Shown here piece by piece: positions 90 to 37,238 of a stretch of 38,580 nt of DNA. The stretch spans positions 1 to 38,580 of the forward strand of contig NIVC01004667.1 in NCBI GenBank assembly GCA_002269645.1, given 5' to 3'. Made by a program: the position numbers and the translations under genes. The DNA comes from Macrostomum lignano. Its lineage: Eukaryota. Numbering within the stretch: position 1 is the stretch's first letter; each line of letters starts with the position of its first letter. The notes below the pieces were generated by a model that was not told the DNA's origin, ran no database searches, and was given only the letters and a program-made list of their open reading frames with translations.

Positions 90-3000
90 ATGGAGTGCGG
101 CGAGTCGCTGGACTTGGACAGCATCGACGTGCTCGGATTGGTCCGCATGAACGTCAGCGGCACCCGGTTCGAGGTGCTGCGCTCGACTCTGCTGAAGCAG
201 CGGCACATCTACGATAAGCTTCTGCACGACGGCATCTACAGGGCAGCTCAGCAGGAGTACTACTTCGACAGGGACCCGGCCATCTTCAAGATCGTGCTGT
301 GGTACTGCCGCTACGGTGAGCGATGAGATGTTGACAGCTTCACAGTCTCGGGCTGTAAACTTATCCGAATAGCGTGGCAGATAAATAAGTTAAGCTTCTT
401 CAAGTCATTGCGACAGTTGTACCTATGAGACAAGTAGTTATTCATATTTTGCTGACCTTGGGGGAAGCATACATGTATACGAGCGTACGAAGAGAGTACA
501 GAGGTCCTGACCTTTGCATCTACTGGCATGTACACACCTCTGTGAGGTCTGGCCCGAGCCCTTGCATCGTGAATGGCAAGTTCGTAATATCGATCCTAAA
601 CCCAGGGGCAGGTGATACAGGTATACAGCACTTCAGGCATTATACAGTTGTCTAGACCAGTTGTTGGCCAGTTTTATCAGGTCAGGCGCTAACTATAAAA
701 ACCCAAAAAACCTATAAAAACCGATAAAAAAATAAAATCCAAACCTTCAAGGTGAACTGCACGTACCGCATCACTATTGCGGCCCGCTGCTGGAGCGCGA
801 GCTGGCCCTGTGGGGTGTCCAATCCGTGATCGAGATCCAGAACTGCTGCGTGAGCCACCTCATGGATACTAAAAGTCGTCTGGTCAGCTTGAAGAAGTTT
901 GAAAATTTCTTCAAAGAAGAGATGGAAAGCGAGCCGCTGCTGCTGCCTGAGGGGTGGAGTTTGACGATCCGCTGGACCTTGACCCGGCCAAGGCGCATGG
1001 TTCGTAAATAATGGAGTGATCCTTGGGACTTCCAGATGCTTGATATTCCTTGTTTAGTCTCTAAGTCTCTAGTATGGGACTCCCATATCTTGCTGAACTG
1101 ATTCTAGGAAGGGATCTTCTGTTGGATCGAATTGAAAACTAAAAGAGGCGGATAACCTTGGCCAGAGAATCGGGTGCATGAGTGCGAGCCAGAGGAGGGT
1201 AGAGAGGAGAGAGAAGAGAGAGGAGAGGAGAGAGGGGAATAGATGGGAGAGAAGGAAGAGAAGACGAGAGAAGAGGTAAGAGAGAAGATTGGAGAGAAGA
1301 GACACAAACCTTGAGCGGGCCGGATTGCTATTGTGAAGTTTCAAAGGACCCGAAGGCCAGATAGAGAGGCTTCGCGTGCCGCATGTGGCCCCCGGGCTGG
1401 GGTTTGCCGACACCTGAAGTAAAGTGACAATCTAACTCAAGCAAAATCGAATCGAGAATTTCAGTCTATCTTCCTTCCGAAGCAAGCGATAAAACAGCTT
1501 CCTATATAGGAAAATCCCACTAGATCTGTCGTAGTATTTCTGGACGAAAATAGCTTACGAGCTCGCATAATCCTTGTTTTCCAACGACACCAAATCTTGT
1601 CTCAAAAGCGCTTCACCAGTTTTGAAATCTTCTTTAATTCCAACTCGCCGCAGGATGGCGCCGGCGCGTGAAAGACGCCCTGGCCGCTCTGCGCCGTCGC
1701 TGCTGGAAGATTCTGGACCATCCGTCGTCCAGCTTCCCGGCGGCCGTGTACGCCGTCATCCTGAGCGTCACGGTGCTTTACACGGTGTTCAGCTTCGTGG
1801 CCAGCACCTCGGATCGATTTCAGCGGCCGATGTCGCCAGGCGAGATTGCATTCTACTCGGCCAAGCATCCGGCCTGGTACGGAAACCACACGAACGCCAA
1901 CCCGCAGATCAAGGTGGACTGGCTCACCTTCCCAGACTGGATTGCTTTCGGCGTGCTCACGTTCGACTTTTTCGTCCGCCTGCTCTTCTGCAAGAACAAG
2001 CTGGCCTACTTTAAAAACAATTACACTATCATCGACATGCTGTCTATTTTGCCATTCTACGTGAACGAGCTGCTGAAGTTCTTCTTTGGCATTATCGAGT
2101 TCTCGGACAGTAACGATTTCGGCCTGGCTGAGTACATCTCCTTCCTGAAGATCGCGCTGTTCATGCGGCTGCTTCGAATCGGCCGGCACTACAGAGGCCT
2201 GCAGGTGCTCATTTATACTCTGCGCACCTCATTCCGAGACCTCATGCTCATGGGAGTATTTGTTGCCCTGGGCACCCTGCTGTTCAGCACGTTGATCTTC
2301 TTCTGCGAGAAATCCCGCAACGAGCCGACCAGCGGAGGCGGCGGTGGCAAGGGAGGTGCCGTTGACTGTTCAAAGTGCCCGGGCGGTGGCGGCGGGGGCA
2401 ACGGAGGTGGCAGACAGGGCACCGACTCGCGTTTCACCTCCATGTTCGACGGCTTCTGGTGGTCGCTGGTTACCATGACAACAGTAGGCTACGGAGACCT
2501 GGTACCGCAGACCAACGCTGGTAAGTTGTTACGAAAATGCTGCTATGCTGGGAGTCAGACAAAGCCAGACGGTTGGGGTCTCTGGGCATGTTCCTGACCG
2601 ATTGGTTGGGTTCTCTGGGCATGTTCCTGACCGATTGGTGGGGGTGTCTGGGCATGTTCCGGACCGATTGGTTGGGGTGTCTGGGCATGTTCCTGACCGA
2701 TTGGTTGGGTTCTCTGGGCATGTTCCTGACCGATTGGTTGGGTTCTCTGGGCATGTTCCGGACCGATTGGTTGGGGTGTCTGAGCATGTTCCTGACCGAT
2801 TGGTTGGGTTCTCTGGGCATGTTCCTGACCGATTGGTTGGGGTGCCTGGGCCTTTTCCTGACCTATCGGTTTGGGACCCCTGGTCGGCAGCTTTCTCAAT
2901 ATCCAGCCCACTCCGCCCAAACGGCAGCATTTGACTGAAGTTTTCTTGAAGCTTTGATTTTCAGTCCCGATCATCGCCATCAGAGATTGGAGCATTGGAG

Positions 3001-6203: not shown

Positions 6204-7411
6204 CTCGATGTAAAGTTAGACACGTCGCTCTGAGTTGAATACAGATTGCTCACCAAGGTTTCGGGAATACATTCCGACTGGTGACTGCAAAATAGAAATG
6301 GTTCTCCGAACGCTAATTGCTGTTAAACATTTAAGTTGAAATTTTAATATTTTTATTTTCTTATGATAAGCCCTAGACTAAAATACGTTTAAATAAATGG
6401 AGTTTGACTGCGTGTCATTTGCCGCATCGTTGGTTTTTGTCATCAAACGCATTCTGAAAAGTCAGCCAGCCTAATTGTGAAGTTCCTAACTGTTCTTAAC
6501 TTTCTAGTTTATTCTCAGCGCAACAAACTCTTACAATCTTTTTGGGTCAATTTTTGTTTTTAATTGACTTTTGCAGCTGCTTAGCACCCTCGCTGTCTGT
6601 CTGTCTGCTTGTTCTGCTTGTATTTTTCTGTCCATCAATTGCAGTGTCATAATAAACTACTCTTATCATTGTGAAATTCTCGCATCCCTTGATAAATTTT
6701 ATTTTTTGTTTAGTTCTGCAAAAGGCTAGATATTGATGTAAATCGTCTAAAATTACTCGAGAAATTCACTGCTCTCATACCTTTATGATCTGTTAAAGCA
6801 TTGAGTCATTTGAAATTAAGTAGTGTAATTTTAGAATCCCAACAAAATGCTCAAATTAATCCCATCTGCTACATCAGAGTTGTCATCTAAATGCATTATT
6901 TGTCCATTTTTTGAAGAGCAGTTCAATGCCCAGCTCCTGCGTCTGACATTCATCCATTTGCACTTTTGAGTCTGAATCAACCCGACCTTCCCCATACACC
7001 TTTATTTTGTTTTCGTTGTCCTAATTGACTGTTTAAAGGCGATAAAAGTGGCATTCGGTTTTTTCACGTCACATCAAGTCTCAGTTTTAAAATACACAGT
7101 TTTGTGGATTGTGAGAAAAATAGACAAATAATTAACAACTGAGAGCCTCCCATGCCGCTTTGCGCTCTTTCTGCCTTGCTTCCTCATGACTTTGCAACTG
7201 GGATAGCCCCCCCCCCCCAGTGATCTTCACTGGCTGCCCGCGTCTCTAGTGTACGAGTACACTGACCCCACACCCACCACCCAACACTCCGCTGCTGCAG
7301 AGGTACGCAGAGTCCATTAAATTTCAGACCTATACCTTGCTTCTCTTCATCATTATAATCATCATACTTCCCAGCATCGTCAGTCTCCAACAGCTGACAA
7401 TAAGCAGTCAG

Positions 7412-8733
7412 ATGCAGCTGGCAAATTTCATTGCAGCAGTGGCGGGCGCAGCGGCCGTTCTTGCTGTGCAACCAGCGACTGCCGATAATGAAATTTTCAT
7501 CCTGGACTCGAGTGACAGGCTCGCCCACGCCGACTCTCAGCACGTTAAGTAAGAGAGCTTCGACTACTAGTTGATTATGTGGTAGCTGTTTTGCGTGTGC
7601 GTGTGTAACCATCGCCCAGTTCGCCGAGTCGCCGTGGCGGAGGAATTCGGCGACCTCCACGCGCCGCCGCCAGAGATCGGCAACTTCAAGATCAGATGGA
7701 TTAACTGAGGAGCAGAACAGATGCGCGGCGGCCTCACAGGCCGAGCAAATGTCCTGGATCGAAGGGTCCAGACGGTGTCGGTAGCTGGCGAGAAGCATAG
7801 AATAACCGCTCCTCAGCTGAGCAAGCCGCGTGCACACACGTCTGGGGAGCTTGAATTCATTCGTTCTCACTGATGTCCGGTCAGACTCCAACCCCTTTGT
7901 TGGGTCGAAACACGCTTTTTGTGTTAAAACACGCTGCGGAGACAAGAGACTTCATAAACCTTCCTTAGCAACACCTCACCGCGACGTCGCAAAAGTGACC
8001 AATCGAACAAAGGTTCATGATGGAGCTGCAGTATCGCTTGGTTCCATAGTACGCTTGTACCAGAAAATCAGGACTCGATTTCCTAAGTAACGACCAGGGA
8101 AGCTCAGTACTCGGAAGTACCCACATCAGTTTGGGGCTTTTGCACGAAAATTAACCCCGAGGCTTGTCGTGCTTTTCACCACCTCCATGAAGGCCAACCC
8201 CTAAGGCCCAGAGTGTGTGCATGTGAGAAAGTTGTGCGTGTTCCGGTGTCAGTAAAAATGTGTAGCTGCTTGCCTCCTAGCGTGCTGTGAGTTGACTGTC
8301 GAACTGACCCATCAAACTAACCAACTAACGATTGTGAGAGCCAATCTCGACATTCGTCTGTGATGTATCTGCGAGCCTTTGTGATTGCTGTGGAACGGTG
8401 TCACGAAAGGCCTTGAGCCAGAGTATCCAACGCTCTGCCACTACACATATCATACATTACATGTAAGATAAACTCTGCCTTCAACACGCGCATCCCCGCA
8501 GGCGGCAGATGCAGCTGCAGTACCTGAACCTTAACTGTCAGTCGGATATCGAGTGCGGCAGCTACCTCTATTGCAACCAGAGGAGAAAGCGGTGCTGCGC
8601 CCCGCACGGTGTCAACTGCGTGAGCCACCTGGACTGCTGCCAGGCAGCCAGGCACACCTGTCGCCCGGTTGACGACGTCACGGTGAACCGGCTGTGCGTG
8701 CTGGGCAGGCACGTGGGTCGGAGGCATCCTTAG
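7412..8733 (+). CDS. Secreted cysteine-rich prepropeptide (122 aa; signal peptide, acidic pro-region, KR, 10-Cys mature domain); exons 7412-7548, 8502-8733
   Basis: The phase-2 join AA|gtaaga...ccgcag|G gives MQLANFIAAVAGAAAVLAVQPATA-DNEIFILDSSDRLAHADSQHVKR-QMQLQYLNLNCQSDIECGSYLYCNQRRKRCCAPHGVNCVSHLDCCQAARHTCRPVDDVTVNRLCVLGRHVGRRHP*. A possible 5'UTR intron runs 7303-7411, and AATAAA is at 8841. Confidence 0.8.
7620..7945 (-). mobile_element. 3' fragment of a non-LTR retrotransposon (LINE) ORF2, degenerate, inside the peptide gene intron
   Basis: The minus strand reads RLAQLRSGYSMLLASYRHRLDPSIQDICSACEAAAHLFC...DLWRRRVEVAEFL. This is typical of the post-RT C-terminal region with a C-x2-C..H..C knuckle. 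No RT core is visible. Confidence 0.7.
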
Positions 8734-8829
8734 GGCGAATGTCTACGATAGACTGACAAAATGATAAAATTAAATAGACAAAAGGAGACATCCGAAAAAA
8801 ATGGTCAGAGACTAATAGTCCATGGCTTA

Positions 8830-9044: not shown

Positions 9045-10085
9045 CTAGCCCTCAAGGGTGGAGTTGAGTTCAAGCTCGACCGCATCGGAACTAGAAGCTT
9101 GAATACCGACTCTCGCCCAGAGCACGATCAAGGCGATCAGGAGTCCTGCCGTGACCGCCACTGCCGCCAACGTGGCCACTCTCACAGCCCCGCTGTCCTC
9201 GAGTAGGTGCTCGGCATGGTGCTCCATACAACAGTTGTTGATTGCGACAGAAATCTTCCTCCAGTGACAGCAGTGGCTGCGGCGTCGGCGACAGGCCTCA
9301 AGCGTTGGTCTGATTCGAAAGCAGACCTTGCTCTCAGGGGAAGCTGGCAGAGAGGTTGCAGATGTTAGCCGTGCTGGTGTTTCTGATGGTGGCGTTGGTG
9401 CCGCCTTACGCTGAGAAGCTGGCTCAGAAATCTCTGTCTTTTTTCGCTTTGCGTCCGCCATTGATGTCACTTCTGTACCAAAAGATATTGTCACTTCAGA
9501 TTGAGATACAACTTTAGTAGCCTGATGACGTGCCATCAAAGTAGGTTGAGGCAATATCGGTTTAGGTTGAGCTACAGTCGGTACAGGTTGAGACACTGTC
9601 GGTACAGGTTGAGACACTGTCGGTACAGGTTGAGACACTATCGGTACAGGTTGAGACACTATCGGTACAGGTTGAGACACTGTCGGTACAGGTTGAGACA
9701 CTGTCGGTACAGGTTGAGACACTGTCGGTACAGGTTGAGACACTGTCGGTACCGGTTGAGACACTGTCGGTACCGGTTGAGACACTGTCTGTACAGGTTG
9801 AGACACTGTCGGTACAGGTTGAGACACTATCGGTACAGGTTGAGACACTGTCGGTACAGGTTGAGACACTATCGGTACAGGTTGAGAATCAACAATTTTA
9901 TGCTTAGATTGTACCTGTGATGATTTATATTCCATGGTTTCAGGCTGAGGCACTGCTCCTACAGTCATGGATTCCTTTGAATTTAGTTGAACTATTGTTG
10001 CTACCGGAGTCTCTGGACGGTCATACAGAGGCTGGACGCTGGGCCGACGGAACAGCGACCGCCGAATATGAAGCACCTGCCTCAT
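9045..10085 (-). CDS. Possible S/T/P-rich single-pass membrane protein (3' part); candidate intron 9914-9522
   Basis: Open frame with an S/T/P-rich stalk, a Cys cluster and a hydrophobic stretch AVRVATLAAVAVTAGLLIALIVLW near the C-terminus. A phase-0 GT..AG pair removes the 21-bp array cleanly. The 5' end is unresolved and no family is recognised. Confidence 0.3.
   Translation of the reverse strand: MRQVLHIRRSLFRRPSVQPLYDRPETPVATIVQLNSKESMTVGAVPQPETMEYKSSQVQSKHKIVDSQPVPIVSQPVPTVSQPVPIVSQPVPTVSQPVQTVSQPVPTVSQPVPTVSQPVPTVSQPVPTVSQPVPTVSQPVPIVSQPVPIVSQPVPTVSQPVPTVSQPVPTVAQPKPILPQPTLMARHQATKVVSQSEVTISFGTEVTSMADAKRKKTEISEPASQRKAAPTPPSETPARLTSATSLPASPESKVCFRIRPTLEACRRRRSHCCHWRKISVAINNCCMEHHAEHLLEDSGAVRVATLAAVAVTAGLLIALIVLWARVGIQASSSDAVELELNSTLEG
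9577..9886. repeat. 21-bp minisatellite (CGGTACAGGTTGAGACACTGT)n, ~15 copies
   Basis: Tandem units read directly. Confidence 0.95.
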
Positions 10086-10571: not shown

Positions 10572-11173
10572 TACTTTTTTGCGATTGAATTCGTCCAAAC
10601 TCCAAAACCTTTCGTCCACTAACGCTTTCTTAATGGGAGCTAAATTTAGATCATACCAAAGACAACTGTGTTCACGCAAAACGGTTCATCCAGTTTGTAA
10701 AACATTTCGTCTAAACCCTTCGTCCAAACAGCTGGAAGCTTCTCAATGCGCCCGGTTTGAACGTAGGTGTCGACAATCGTTTTGGCTGTCTTTCTCTTGA
10801 TCCCAAGGATATCGGCCAGTTGTTTCCAATCGCGGCCTTCTTCAACAGCCAAGGCTAATCGCCTGCGGTCTTCGTTTGACACTGGATGGTAGGGGCCTCG
10901 GTTCATCTTCGACTGTTTTGCCGGGTTCAGAATGGAAGATATGCGTTGCTGTAGCTGTAGTGGTAGCAAAAGCGAACTGTCAATTGGGTGTTAACTATGG
11001 TAGGAACAGTACACTCGGTCTCTAGTCTAGGGGACGAAATGTTTTACAAACTGGATGAACCTTTTTGCGTGAACACAGTTGTCTTTGGTATGATCTAAAT
11101 TTAGCTTCCATTAAGAAAGCATTTGTGGACGAAAGGTTTTGCAGTTTGGACGAATTCAATCGCAAAAAAAGTA
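10572..11173 (-). mobile_element. Internally deleted Tc1/mariner (IS630-Tc1-mariner) DNA transposon, ~600 bp
   Basis: ~140-bp TIRs (10572-10711 and 11033-11173), flanked by TA at 10570-10571 and 11174-11175. The interior encodes only an N-terminal HTH (EDRRRLALAVEEGRDWKQLADILGIKRKTAKTIVDTY..TGR), with no DDE domain. Confidence 0.85.

Positions 11174-14899: not shown

Positions 14900-37238
<22,339 letters not shown>

Follow-up and report, generated by a model that had tools for sequence, protein, structure and literature searches.

A two-exon gene for a 122-amino-acid prepropeptide with ten cysteines in its predicted mature part was found in a 38,580-nt stretch of the genome of the flatworm Macrostomum lignano (assembly GCA_002269645.1, contig NIVC01004667.1, positions 1 to 38,580, forward strand; hereafter the window). 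Comparisons at the level of sequence confirmed this gene and placed its product in what appears to be a small, uncharacterised, spiralian family common to Platyhelminthes and Nemertea. Structural modelling gave moderate support to the assignment of its last six cysteines to a putative C-terminal module of the inhibitor-cystine-knot (ICK, or knottin) type. We consider the chance about even that the precursor is secreted and processed by a proprotein convertase to a knottin-type ligand of an ion channel or receptor, acting in endogenous signalling in preference to a venom role.

Coding exon 1 (7412..7548, forward strand, 137 nt) begins with Met1 and ends two bases into the Lys46 codon. The coding part of exon 2 (8502..8733, forward strand) supplies the last base of that codon, Arg47, the mature peptide, and a TAG stop codon at 8731-8733. 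Between the exons, a donor TAA/GTAAGAG at 7549 (slash, splice junction) is paired with an acceptor in a tract rich in pyrimidines (...CATCCCCGCAG/G), which ends at 8501. Splicing in phase 2 joins AA (7547-7548) to G (8502) to form the Lys46 codon, and the first whole codon of exon 2, CGG, encodes Arg47, so that the Lys-Arg (KR) site arises at the junction itself. Both the coordinates and the phase were as claimed in an earlier note on this DNA, which had been made from the sequence alone. The joined product reads MQLANFIAAVAGAAAVLAVQPATA/DNEIFILDSSDRLAHADSQHV/KR/QMQLQYLNLNC...VGRRHP. Its start codon at 7412 is the first ATG, and 50 in-frame upstream codons that were examined held neither a stop codon nor another Met. 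The spliced product was 100% identical, across 100% of its length, to UniRef100 entry A0A1I8HBI9_9PLAT (Macrostomum lignano, unreviewed), which is named "SMB domain-containing protein". Since that UniProt model was made separately, the two-exon structure has been reached independently, and the description of the gene as "hidden" in the earlier note did not stand. The gene was already predicted in UniProt, though misnamed, and its family is uncharacterised and absent from Pfam.

On the 5' side of the gene, a tract of pyrimidines at 7334-7375 (+), ending CTTCCCAG 37 nt before the ATG, resembles a 3' splice acceptor, and a TATAA sequence occurs at 7354. Many M. lignano mRNAs are trans-spliced, and this acceptor-like tract could accept a spliced leader or a non-coding upstream exon. 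On the 3' side, ATTAAA occurs at 8769 and 8833 in addition to the candidate polyadenylation signal listed in Table 1; at the level of pattern matches, AATAAA and ATTAAA motifs together span 36-110 nt past the stop codon.

By inspection, the encoded protein had the layout that had been ascribed to it, in which a signal peptide is followed by an acidic pro-region and then by a basic mature part. A 17-residue hydrophobic region (LANFIAAVAGAAAVLAV) with a grand average of hydropathy (GRAVY) of 2.24 is followed by QPATA, with small residues at positions -3 and -1 relative to the predicted cut, and the isoelectric point (pI) shifts from 4.3 in the pro-region to 8.8 in the mature part. The cysteine framework, C-x5-C-x5-C-x6-CC-x6-C-x5-CC-x6-C-x11-C (spacing 5, 5, 6, 0, 6, 5, 0, 6, 11), was exactly that given earlier, and the protein ends 11 residues past Cys10.

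When 1.84 billion representative proteins were searched exhaustively with phmmer (E up to 0.001), eight were returned, namely the query, four repetitive proteins, and three small true relatives of 133, 100, and 112 amino acids (P0005, E 4e-6; P0007, E 2e-4; P0008, E 2e-4). A family-profile search of a 5.8-billion-protein collection found only the same four proteins (P0001, P0005, P0007, and P0008). One of the relatives, P0007, is the product of LOC135494651 of the nemertean Lineus longissimus. P0005 is an open reading frame (ORF) on a 2.6-kb JGI metagenome contig (3300040954), and P0008 lies on a 1.39-kb (1390 nt) Logan contig of SRR3581107 (L002), which is mRNA-like in having a single unbroken ORF followed by a long 3' tail. 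Across the domain, these relatives are 32-40% identical to the flatworm protein. They retain 9-10 of its cysteines and their spacing, together with the non-cysteine residues P80, H81, G82, L54, and R47 (flatworm numbering). The framework common to the four proteins can be written C-x5-C-x5-C-x6-CC-x6-C-x5-CC-x5/6-C-x7/11-C, with a Cys2-Cys3 loop of four residues in P0008; all four also have the motif CC[AS]PHG, a Leu four residues before Cys1, and an Arg at the position of the R of the flatworm KR site. The flatworm protein differs from its relatives in its Cys9-Cys10 loop, which has 11 residues instead of 7, and in a basic tail, VLGRHVGRRHP, that it alone possesses.

P0008 begins with a signal peptide (MYTLVVMVMLSVSCNCARA/EEE) and a very acidic pro-region, a layout as in the flatworm precursor, and the flatworm pro-region can be loosely aligned with those of P0007 and P0008, which are likewise acidic. 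Mature peptides across the family are cationic, with a pI of 7.6-9.1. The genomic sequences of Lineus (L001) and of the metagenome relative (L003) each have a phase-2 intron 17 codons before Cys1, and the phase-2 intron of the flatworm gene lies 11 codons before Cys1. The same intron phase at nearly the same place, combined with the same domain layout, argues for common descent and for a real splice in the flatworm gene. A search for paralogues of the ten-cysteine gene, which the earlier note had suggested as a check, was run on the 38.6-kb window and found none; none was found in the 25-kb Lineus locus either, and the 90% sequence cluster of the flatworm protein has a single member.

For the Lineus gene (OU343001.1; L001 6001-6080), splicing in the NCBI model of LOC135494651 takes place after MQKVVV, which leaves the product without a signal peptide. 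Reading past this first donor yields MQKVVVVSSFIILVSLLFLFSSSEFV, ending at a phase-0 GT. Because this extension would supply a normal signal peptide, the NCBI model probably uses the wrong donor.

The four repetitive proteins from the phmmer search (P0002-P0004 and P0006, E 1e-14 to 1e-4) were rejected as spurious. They are large, and their scores are sums of per-repeat matches of no more than 6.5 bits, which fall mostly on the signal and pro-region. A word-indexed search with the single flatworm protein returned only the protein itself, and a metagenome scan for [RK][KG][KRQ]CC[AS]PHG gave 291 pattern matches, none of which was confirmed. Sequence searches of the PDB, with the flatworm protein and with the family profile, yielded nothing meaningful. 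No paper with a CCAPHG or CCSPHG motif, with a mention of the run SRR3581107, or with Dickkopf together with Macrostomum, was found in the literature. These searches found no orthologue in any characterised family, a result that would have counted against the reading in the earlier note had it been otherwise.

Comparison across the family bears on the processing signals that had been proposed for the flatworm precursor. Its invariant Arg stands in the context KR in the flatworm and RRSR, KKYR, and VRQR in the relatives. Subtilisin-like proprotein convertases follow the rule [KR]-X(0,2)-[KR], which is satisfied by the basic sites of three of the four members (KR, RRSR, and KKYR). The N-terminal Gln of the mature flatworm peptide, previously suggested as a source of pyroglutamate, is not conserved: the mature part of the relatives would start with A, D, or N, and pyroglutamate is therefore no feature of the family. 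Likewise, the C-terminal GRR, read earlier as an amidation signal, occurs only in the flatworm protein, the relatives ending in ...NPTPARG, ...NPPPPN, and ...CRAP. The Cys3-Cys4 loop, which contains RRKR in the flatworm peptide, is basic in the relatives too (SRRGK, EAKGK, and LKRKQ). It is possible that RRKR serves as a second processing site, which would give a two-chain, disulfide-linked peptide, or as part of a binding loop.

The last six cysteines of the flatworm protein (Cys78, 85, 91, 92, 99, and 111) have the spacing C-x6-C-x5-CC-x6-C-x11-C and fit the six-cysteine ICK framework C-C-CC-C-C. The same arrangement, C-x6-C-x5-CC-x6-C-xn-C, occurs in ICK peptides such as psalmotoxin-1, hanatoxin, Hm1a, and the double-knot toxins. 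AlphaFold2 models, built on four-sequence alignments only, were compared with structures in the PDB by Foldseek (E up to 10). The model of the mature flatworm peptide had a mean predicted local distance difference test score (pLDDT) of 76, and 25 of its 31 matches were ICK peptides, including spider toxins, squash trypsin inhibitors, and double-knot toxins. It superposed on Hm1a, hanatoxin, and Pn3a with a root-mean-square deviation (RMSD) of 0.7-1.2 A across 25-27 residues. A second, independent model, of the Lineus protein, had a pLDDT of 85-92 in the domain. ICK peptides accounted for 20 of its 21 matches, the top one being psalmotoxin-1 (template-modelling score, TM, of 0.69 normalised to the target; RMSD 1.9 A; probability 0.75). 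Across both lists of ICK matches, the best TM normalised to the target was 0.72, and the predicted fold superposed on ICK toxins at approximately 1-2 A across 25-39 residues. Weak Foldseek E-values are usual for domains of this small size. Because every E-value here was above 0.2, it is the agreement among the hits, and not any single match, that supports the fold assignment. The earlier knottin reading of the last six cysteines thus held as regards the framework and the agreement of two hit lists, but not at the level of an individually significant match. Compared with ICK toxins, the flatworm peptide has ten cysteines, a putative extra N-terminal four-cysteine subdomain, and a length of about 75 amino acids. 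It also showed no significant sequence match to toxin families, the best being Conotoxin_I2 at E 0.045, for one family member only.

Two other identities were weighed for the ten-cysteine domain. According to its automatic UniRef name, the protein would contain a somatomedin-B (SMB) domain, and its C-x5-CC-x6-C segment does have the spacing of the last four cysteines in the SMB domain of vitronectin. However, Pfam Somatomedin_B gave no match even at E up to 10, no SMB chain appeared in the PDB sequence searches and no SMB structure in either Foldseek list, and the C-x-C element of SMB is absent from the flatworm protein. BLASTP against the vitronectin SMB sequence (verified against 1oc0) aligned 17 residues at E 0.15, covering only C-x5-CC-x6-C. 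The name "SMB domain" is unsupported by these comparisons, and we regard an SMB domain as scarcely credible. A resemblance was also found to the first cysteine-rich domain (CRD1) of Dickkopf proteins and to draxin, which would make the flatworm peptide a stand-alone, diverged CRD1 relative acting on Wnt co-receptors or DCC-type receptors. In fetched DKK1 sequences, CRD1 has the spacing C-x5-C-x5-C-xn-C-x2-C-x6-C-x5-CC-x4-C-x4-C, parallel to that of the ten flatworm cysteines, and both open with the motif C-x-[SD]-D-x-E-C-G-x3-[FY]-C, the DKK1 version being much like CQSDIECGSYLYC. Dickkopf_N (PF04706) was moreover the only Pfam match of the flatworm protein, and the top Foldseek match of its model was the draxin cysteine-rich domain (5z5k_B, 65 columns). 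The Dickkopf_N score was, however, 10.3 bits against a cut-off of 25 (E 0.94), and none of the three other family members matched this profile. Alignment of the family with DKK1 CRD1 profiles by hhalign gave probabilities of 12.5% (19 columns) and 9.8% (45 columns), with the cysteine register lost after Cys3. The draxin match, too, was weak (RMSD 8.2 A, TM 0.31-0.35, E 0.26), and the solved CRD1 of DKK4 (5o57 and 9x64) was in neither Foldseek list, although the CRD1 profile finds both structures at E 1e-14. Cys4 and Cys5 are adjacent in the flatworm protein but have two residues between them in DKK, and the flatworm has longer final loops (the last two) than DKK1 CRD1. The basic R/K-rich loop lies between Cys3 and Cys4 in the flatworm but between Cys5 and Cys6 in DKK1, and no CRD2/colipase domain follows the ten-cysteine core. 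Spacing alone does not show Dickkopf homology. The likeness to CRD1 noted earlier is real in the spacing and in the first C-x-x-D-x-[DE]-C-x4-[FY]-C motif, and, as far as these alignments indicate, falls short of demonstrable homology; a module of the Dickkopf/draxin type seems to us improbable. The DKK1 CRD1 profile touched an ICK toxin at E 0.31, which suggests that "knottin-like" and "CRD1-like" may describe overlapping fold space. The likeness to arthropod prohormone-3/ITG-like peptides, also raised in the earlier note, received no support, although no comparison aimed at it could be made.

In the proposed mechanism, the signal peptide (residues 1-24) would direct the protein into the secretory pathway, and a subtilisin-like proprotein convertase would cut at Lys46-Arg47 to remove the acidic pro-region (residues 25-45). 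The product would be a basic, five-disulfide peptide with a mass of about 8.6 kDa, in which the last six cysteines would fold as an inhibitor cystine knot, a fold defined by I-IV, II-V, III-VI disulfide pairing, and the N-terminal four would form a small extra subdomain packed against the knot. Once outside the cell, this peptide would be a stable ligand whose target in the membrane is an ion channel or a receptor. Several observations weigh against this proposal. The RRKR sequence inside the domain is a stronger furin motif than KR, the VRQR site of P0008 matches convertase rules poorly, and in the Lineus model AlphaFold gives an unbroken helix across the basic site. Only four sequences were in the alignments behind the two structural models, and no Foldseek match of either model had an E-value of 0.2 or lower. 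Present data, furthermore, fit signalling, defensive, and gland-secretion roles alike, and an exact look-up of the flatworm protein in the contigs of the assembly collection found no transcript-derived copy.

This absence of a transcript on record could also be taken as a sign that there is no functional gene, but instead a chance pair of ORFs or a pseudogene that automatic annotation mistook for a gene. The base at -3 before the ATG is a C, and a long antisense ORF overlaps exon 1, both of which would fit such an origin. On the other hand, the frame is intact, the splice sites are canonical, and all ten cysteines are kept, while non-cysteine motifs are common to relatives in another phylum. 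The intron phase before the cysteine-rich domain is, moreover, conserved in both genomic relatives, and one relative (P0008) is found on an mRNA-like contig. An explanation without a functional gene is accordingly judged very improbable. A more serious competitor is a defensive, predatory, or antimicrobial peptide that is secreted by glands and released outside, in a mucus, rhabdite, or proboscis-type secretion. Nearly all fold matches were venom ICK toxins, the flatworm precursor resembles those of ICK toxins in its signal peptide, basic site, and acidic pro-region, a layout typical of toxin precursors, and the mature peptides carry a positive charge throughout the family. One relative, in addition, comes from the toxic nemertean Lineus longissimus, which is known for ICK mucus toxins (nemertides). 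The flatworm gene is, however, apparently single-copy and kept across two phyla, unlike those of expanded, fast-evolving toxin families, and a check of two surveys of nemertean toxins did not find the family motif among their supplementary sequences. M. lignano is not known to be venomous, and in this its peptide also differs from ICK toxins. Taken together, a gland-secreted peptide of this kind appears unlikely, though deserving of consideration. Because there was one copy per organism in the data searched and the family is kept across two phyla, endogenous signalling, whether neuro/endocrine or paracrine, is somewhat more likely than a venom role.

Secreted, disulfide-rich peptides built around an ICK core are already a well-known kind, and, as matters stand, the family adds one more to the orphan secreted peptide families of which invertebrate genomes hold many. 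Its recognition nevertheless gives a defined candidate ligand, which has a core of the knottin type and a precursor like that of a prohormone, in a flatworm model open to RNA interference and transgenesis. If its target were an ion channel or a Wnt or axon-guidance receptor, the peptide would be a useful probe and an example of an endogenous knottin outside venoms. A further idea, which we hold to be doubtful, is that it represents an ancient spiralian hormone or paracrine factor, an endogenous knottin that is possibly a stand-alone descendant of the module behind Dickkopf CRD1 and the draxin domain. Flatworms would then possess an extracellular regulator of a receptor or ion channel that had gone unrecognised. 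Genes of this kind, small, split by introns, and coding for cysteine-rich secreted peptides, are easily overlooked or wrongly named, and the name "SMB domain" is misleading here.

Table 1. Features of the ten-cysteine precursor gene and example repeat arrays in the window.
Feature	Position	Strand	Basis
Signal-peptide-like segment, residues 1-24 (MQLANFIAAVAGAAAVLAVQPATA)	7412..7483	+	Inspection; predicted cut after A-T-A
Acidic pro-region, residues 25-45 (DNEIFILDSSDRLAHADSQHV), pI 4.3, net charge -4	7484..7546	+	Composition
Phase-2 intron, 953 nt, GTAAGA...CCCCGCAG	7549..8501	+	Sequence; GT..AG
Arg47, P1 of putative convertase site Lys46-Arg47	8503..8505	+	Arg invariant in 4/4 family members; cleavage inferred
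Predicted mature peptide, residues 48-122, 75 aa, pI 8.8, net charge +5	8506..8730	+	Sequence
Ten-Cys core, Cys58-Cys111, with family motif CCAPHG	8536..8697	+	Sequence, family alignment, model
RRKR, residues 72-75, furin-type motif in basic Cys3-Cys4 loop	8578..8589	+	Direct read
Gly117-Arg118-Arg119, possible amidation plus dibasic signal	8713..8721	+	Direct read; only in flatworm
Candidate polyadenylation signal AATAAA	8841..8846	+	Pattern match; 108 nt past stop
Example minisatellite arrays	20262-21695, 31734-33586, 30508-31401, 16117-16697, 18760-19394, 17047-17767		Repeat scan

The antisense ORF mentioned above (7184-7945, minus strand, 253 amino acids) spans exon 1, continues across the initial 400 nt of the intron, and had no Pfam match. 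Its middle part (approximately 7630-7860, ...CTRLAQLRSGYSMLLASYRHRLDPSIQDICSACE...) resembles a decayed C-terminal tail of the ORF2 of a retrotransposon without long terminal repeats (non-LTR).

The window as a whole is eukaryotic and rich in minisatellites, with more than 20 arrays whose periods range from 14 to 96 nt and which reach up to 103 copies. These arrays give rise to long spurious ORFs in several frames and to strong local GC skew. A 346-amino-acid ORF at 9045-10085 (minus strand) contains about 16 copies of the heptad PVPTVSQ, encoded by a 21-nt array (9543-9887), and is hydrophobic along a stretch close to its C-terminus. It had no Pfam match and may be an exon of a repeat-containing membrane protein or a repeat artefact. 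At 10646-10969 (minus strand), a 107-amino-acid ORF matched the homeodomain-like family HTH_23 (E 1e-5) and probably represents part of the transposase of a DNA transposon. At 22889-27342 (plus strand), thrombospondin type-1 repeats (TSP1_spondin and TSP1_ADAMTS; WSxWS) were found in several ORF pieces, which are broken up by minisatellites and probably belong to one large multi-exon gene for an extracellular protein. Finally, a large exon at 1668-2597 (plus strand) encodes part of a voltage-gated K+ channel (Ion_trans, E 2e-29; pore signature TVGYGD), with an unusual Gly-rich insert (GGGGGKGG...GGGGGGNGGG) in the loop that precedes the pore helix.

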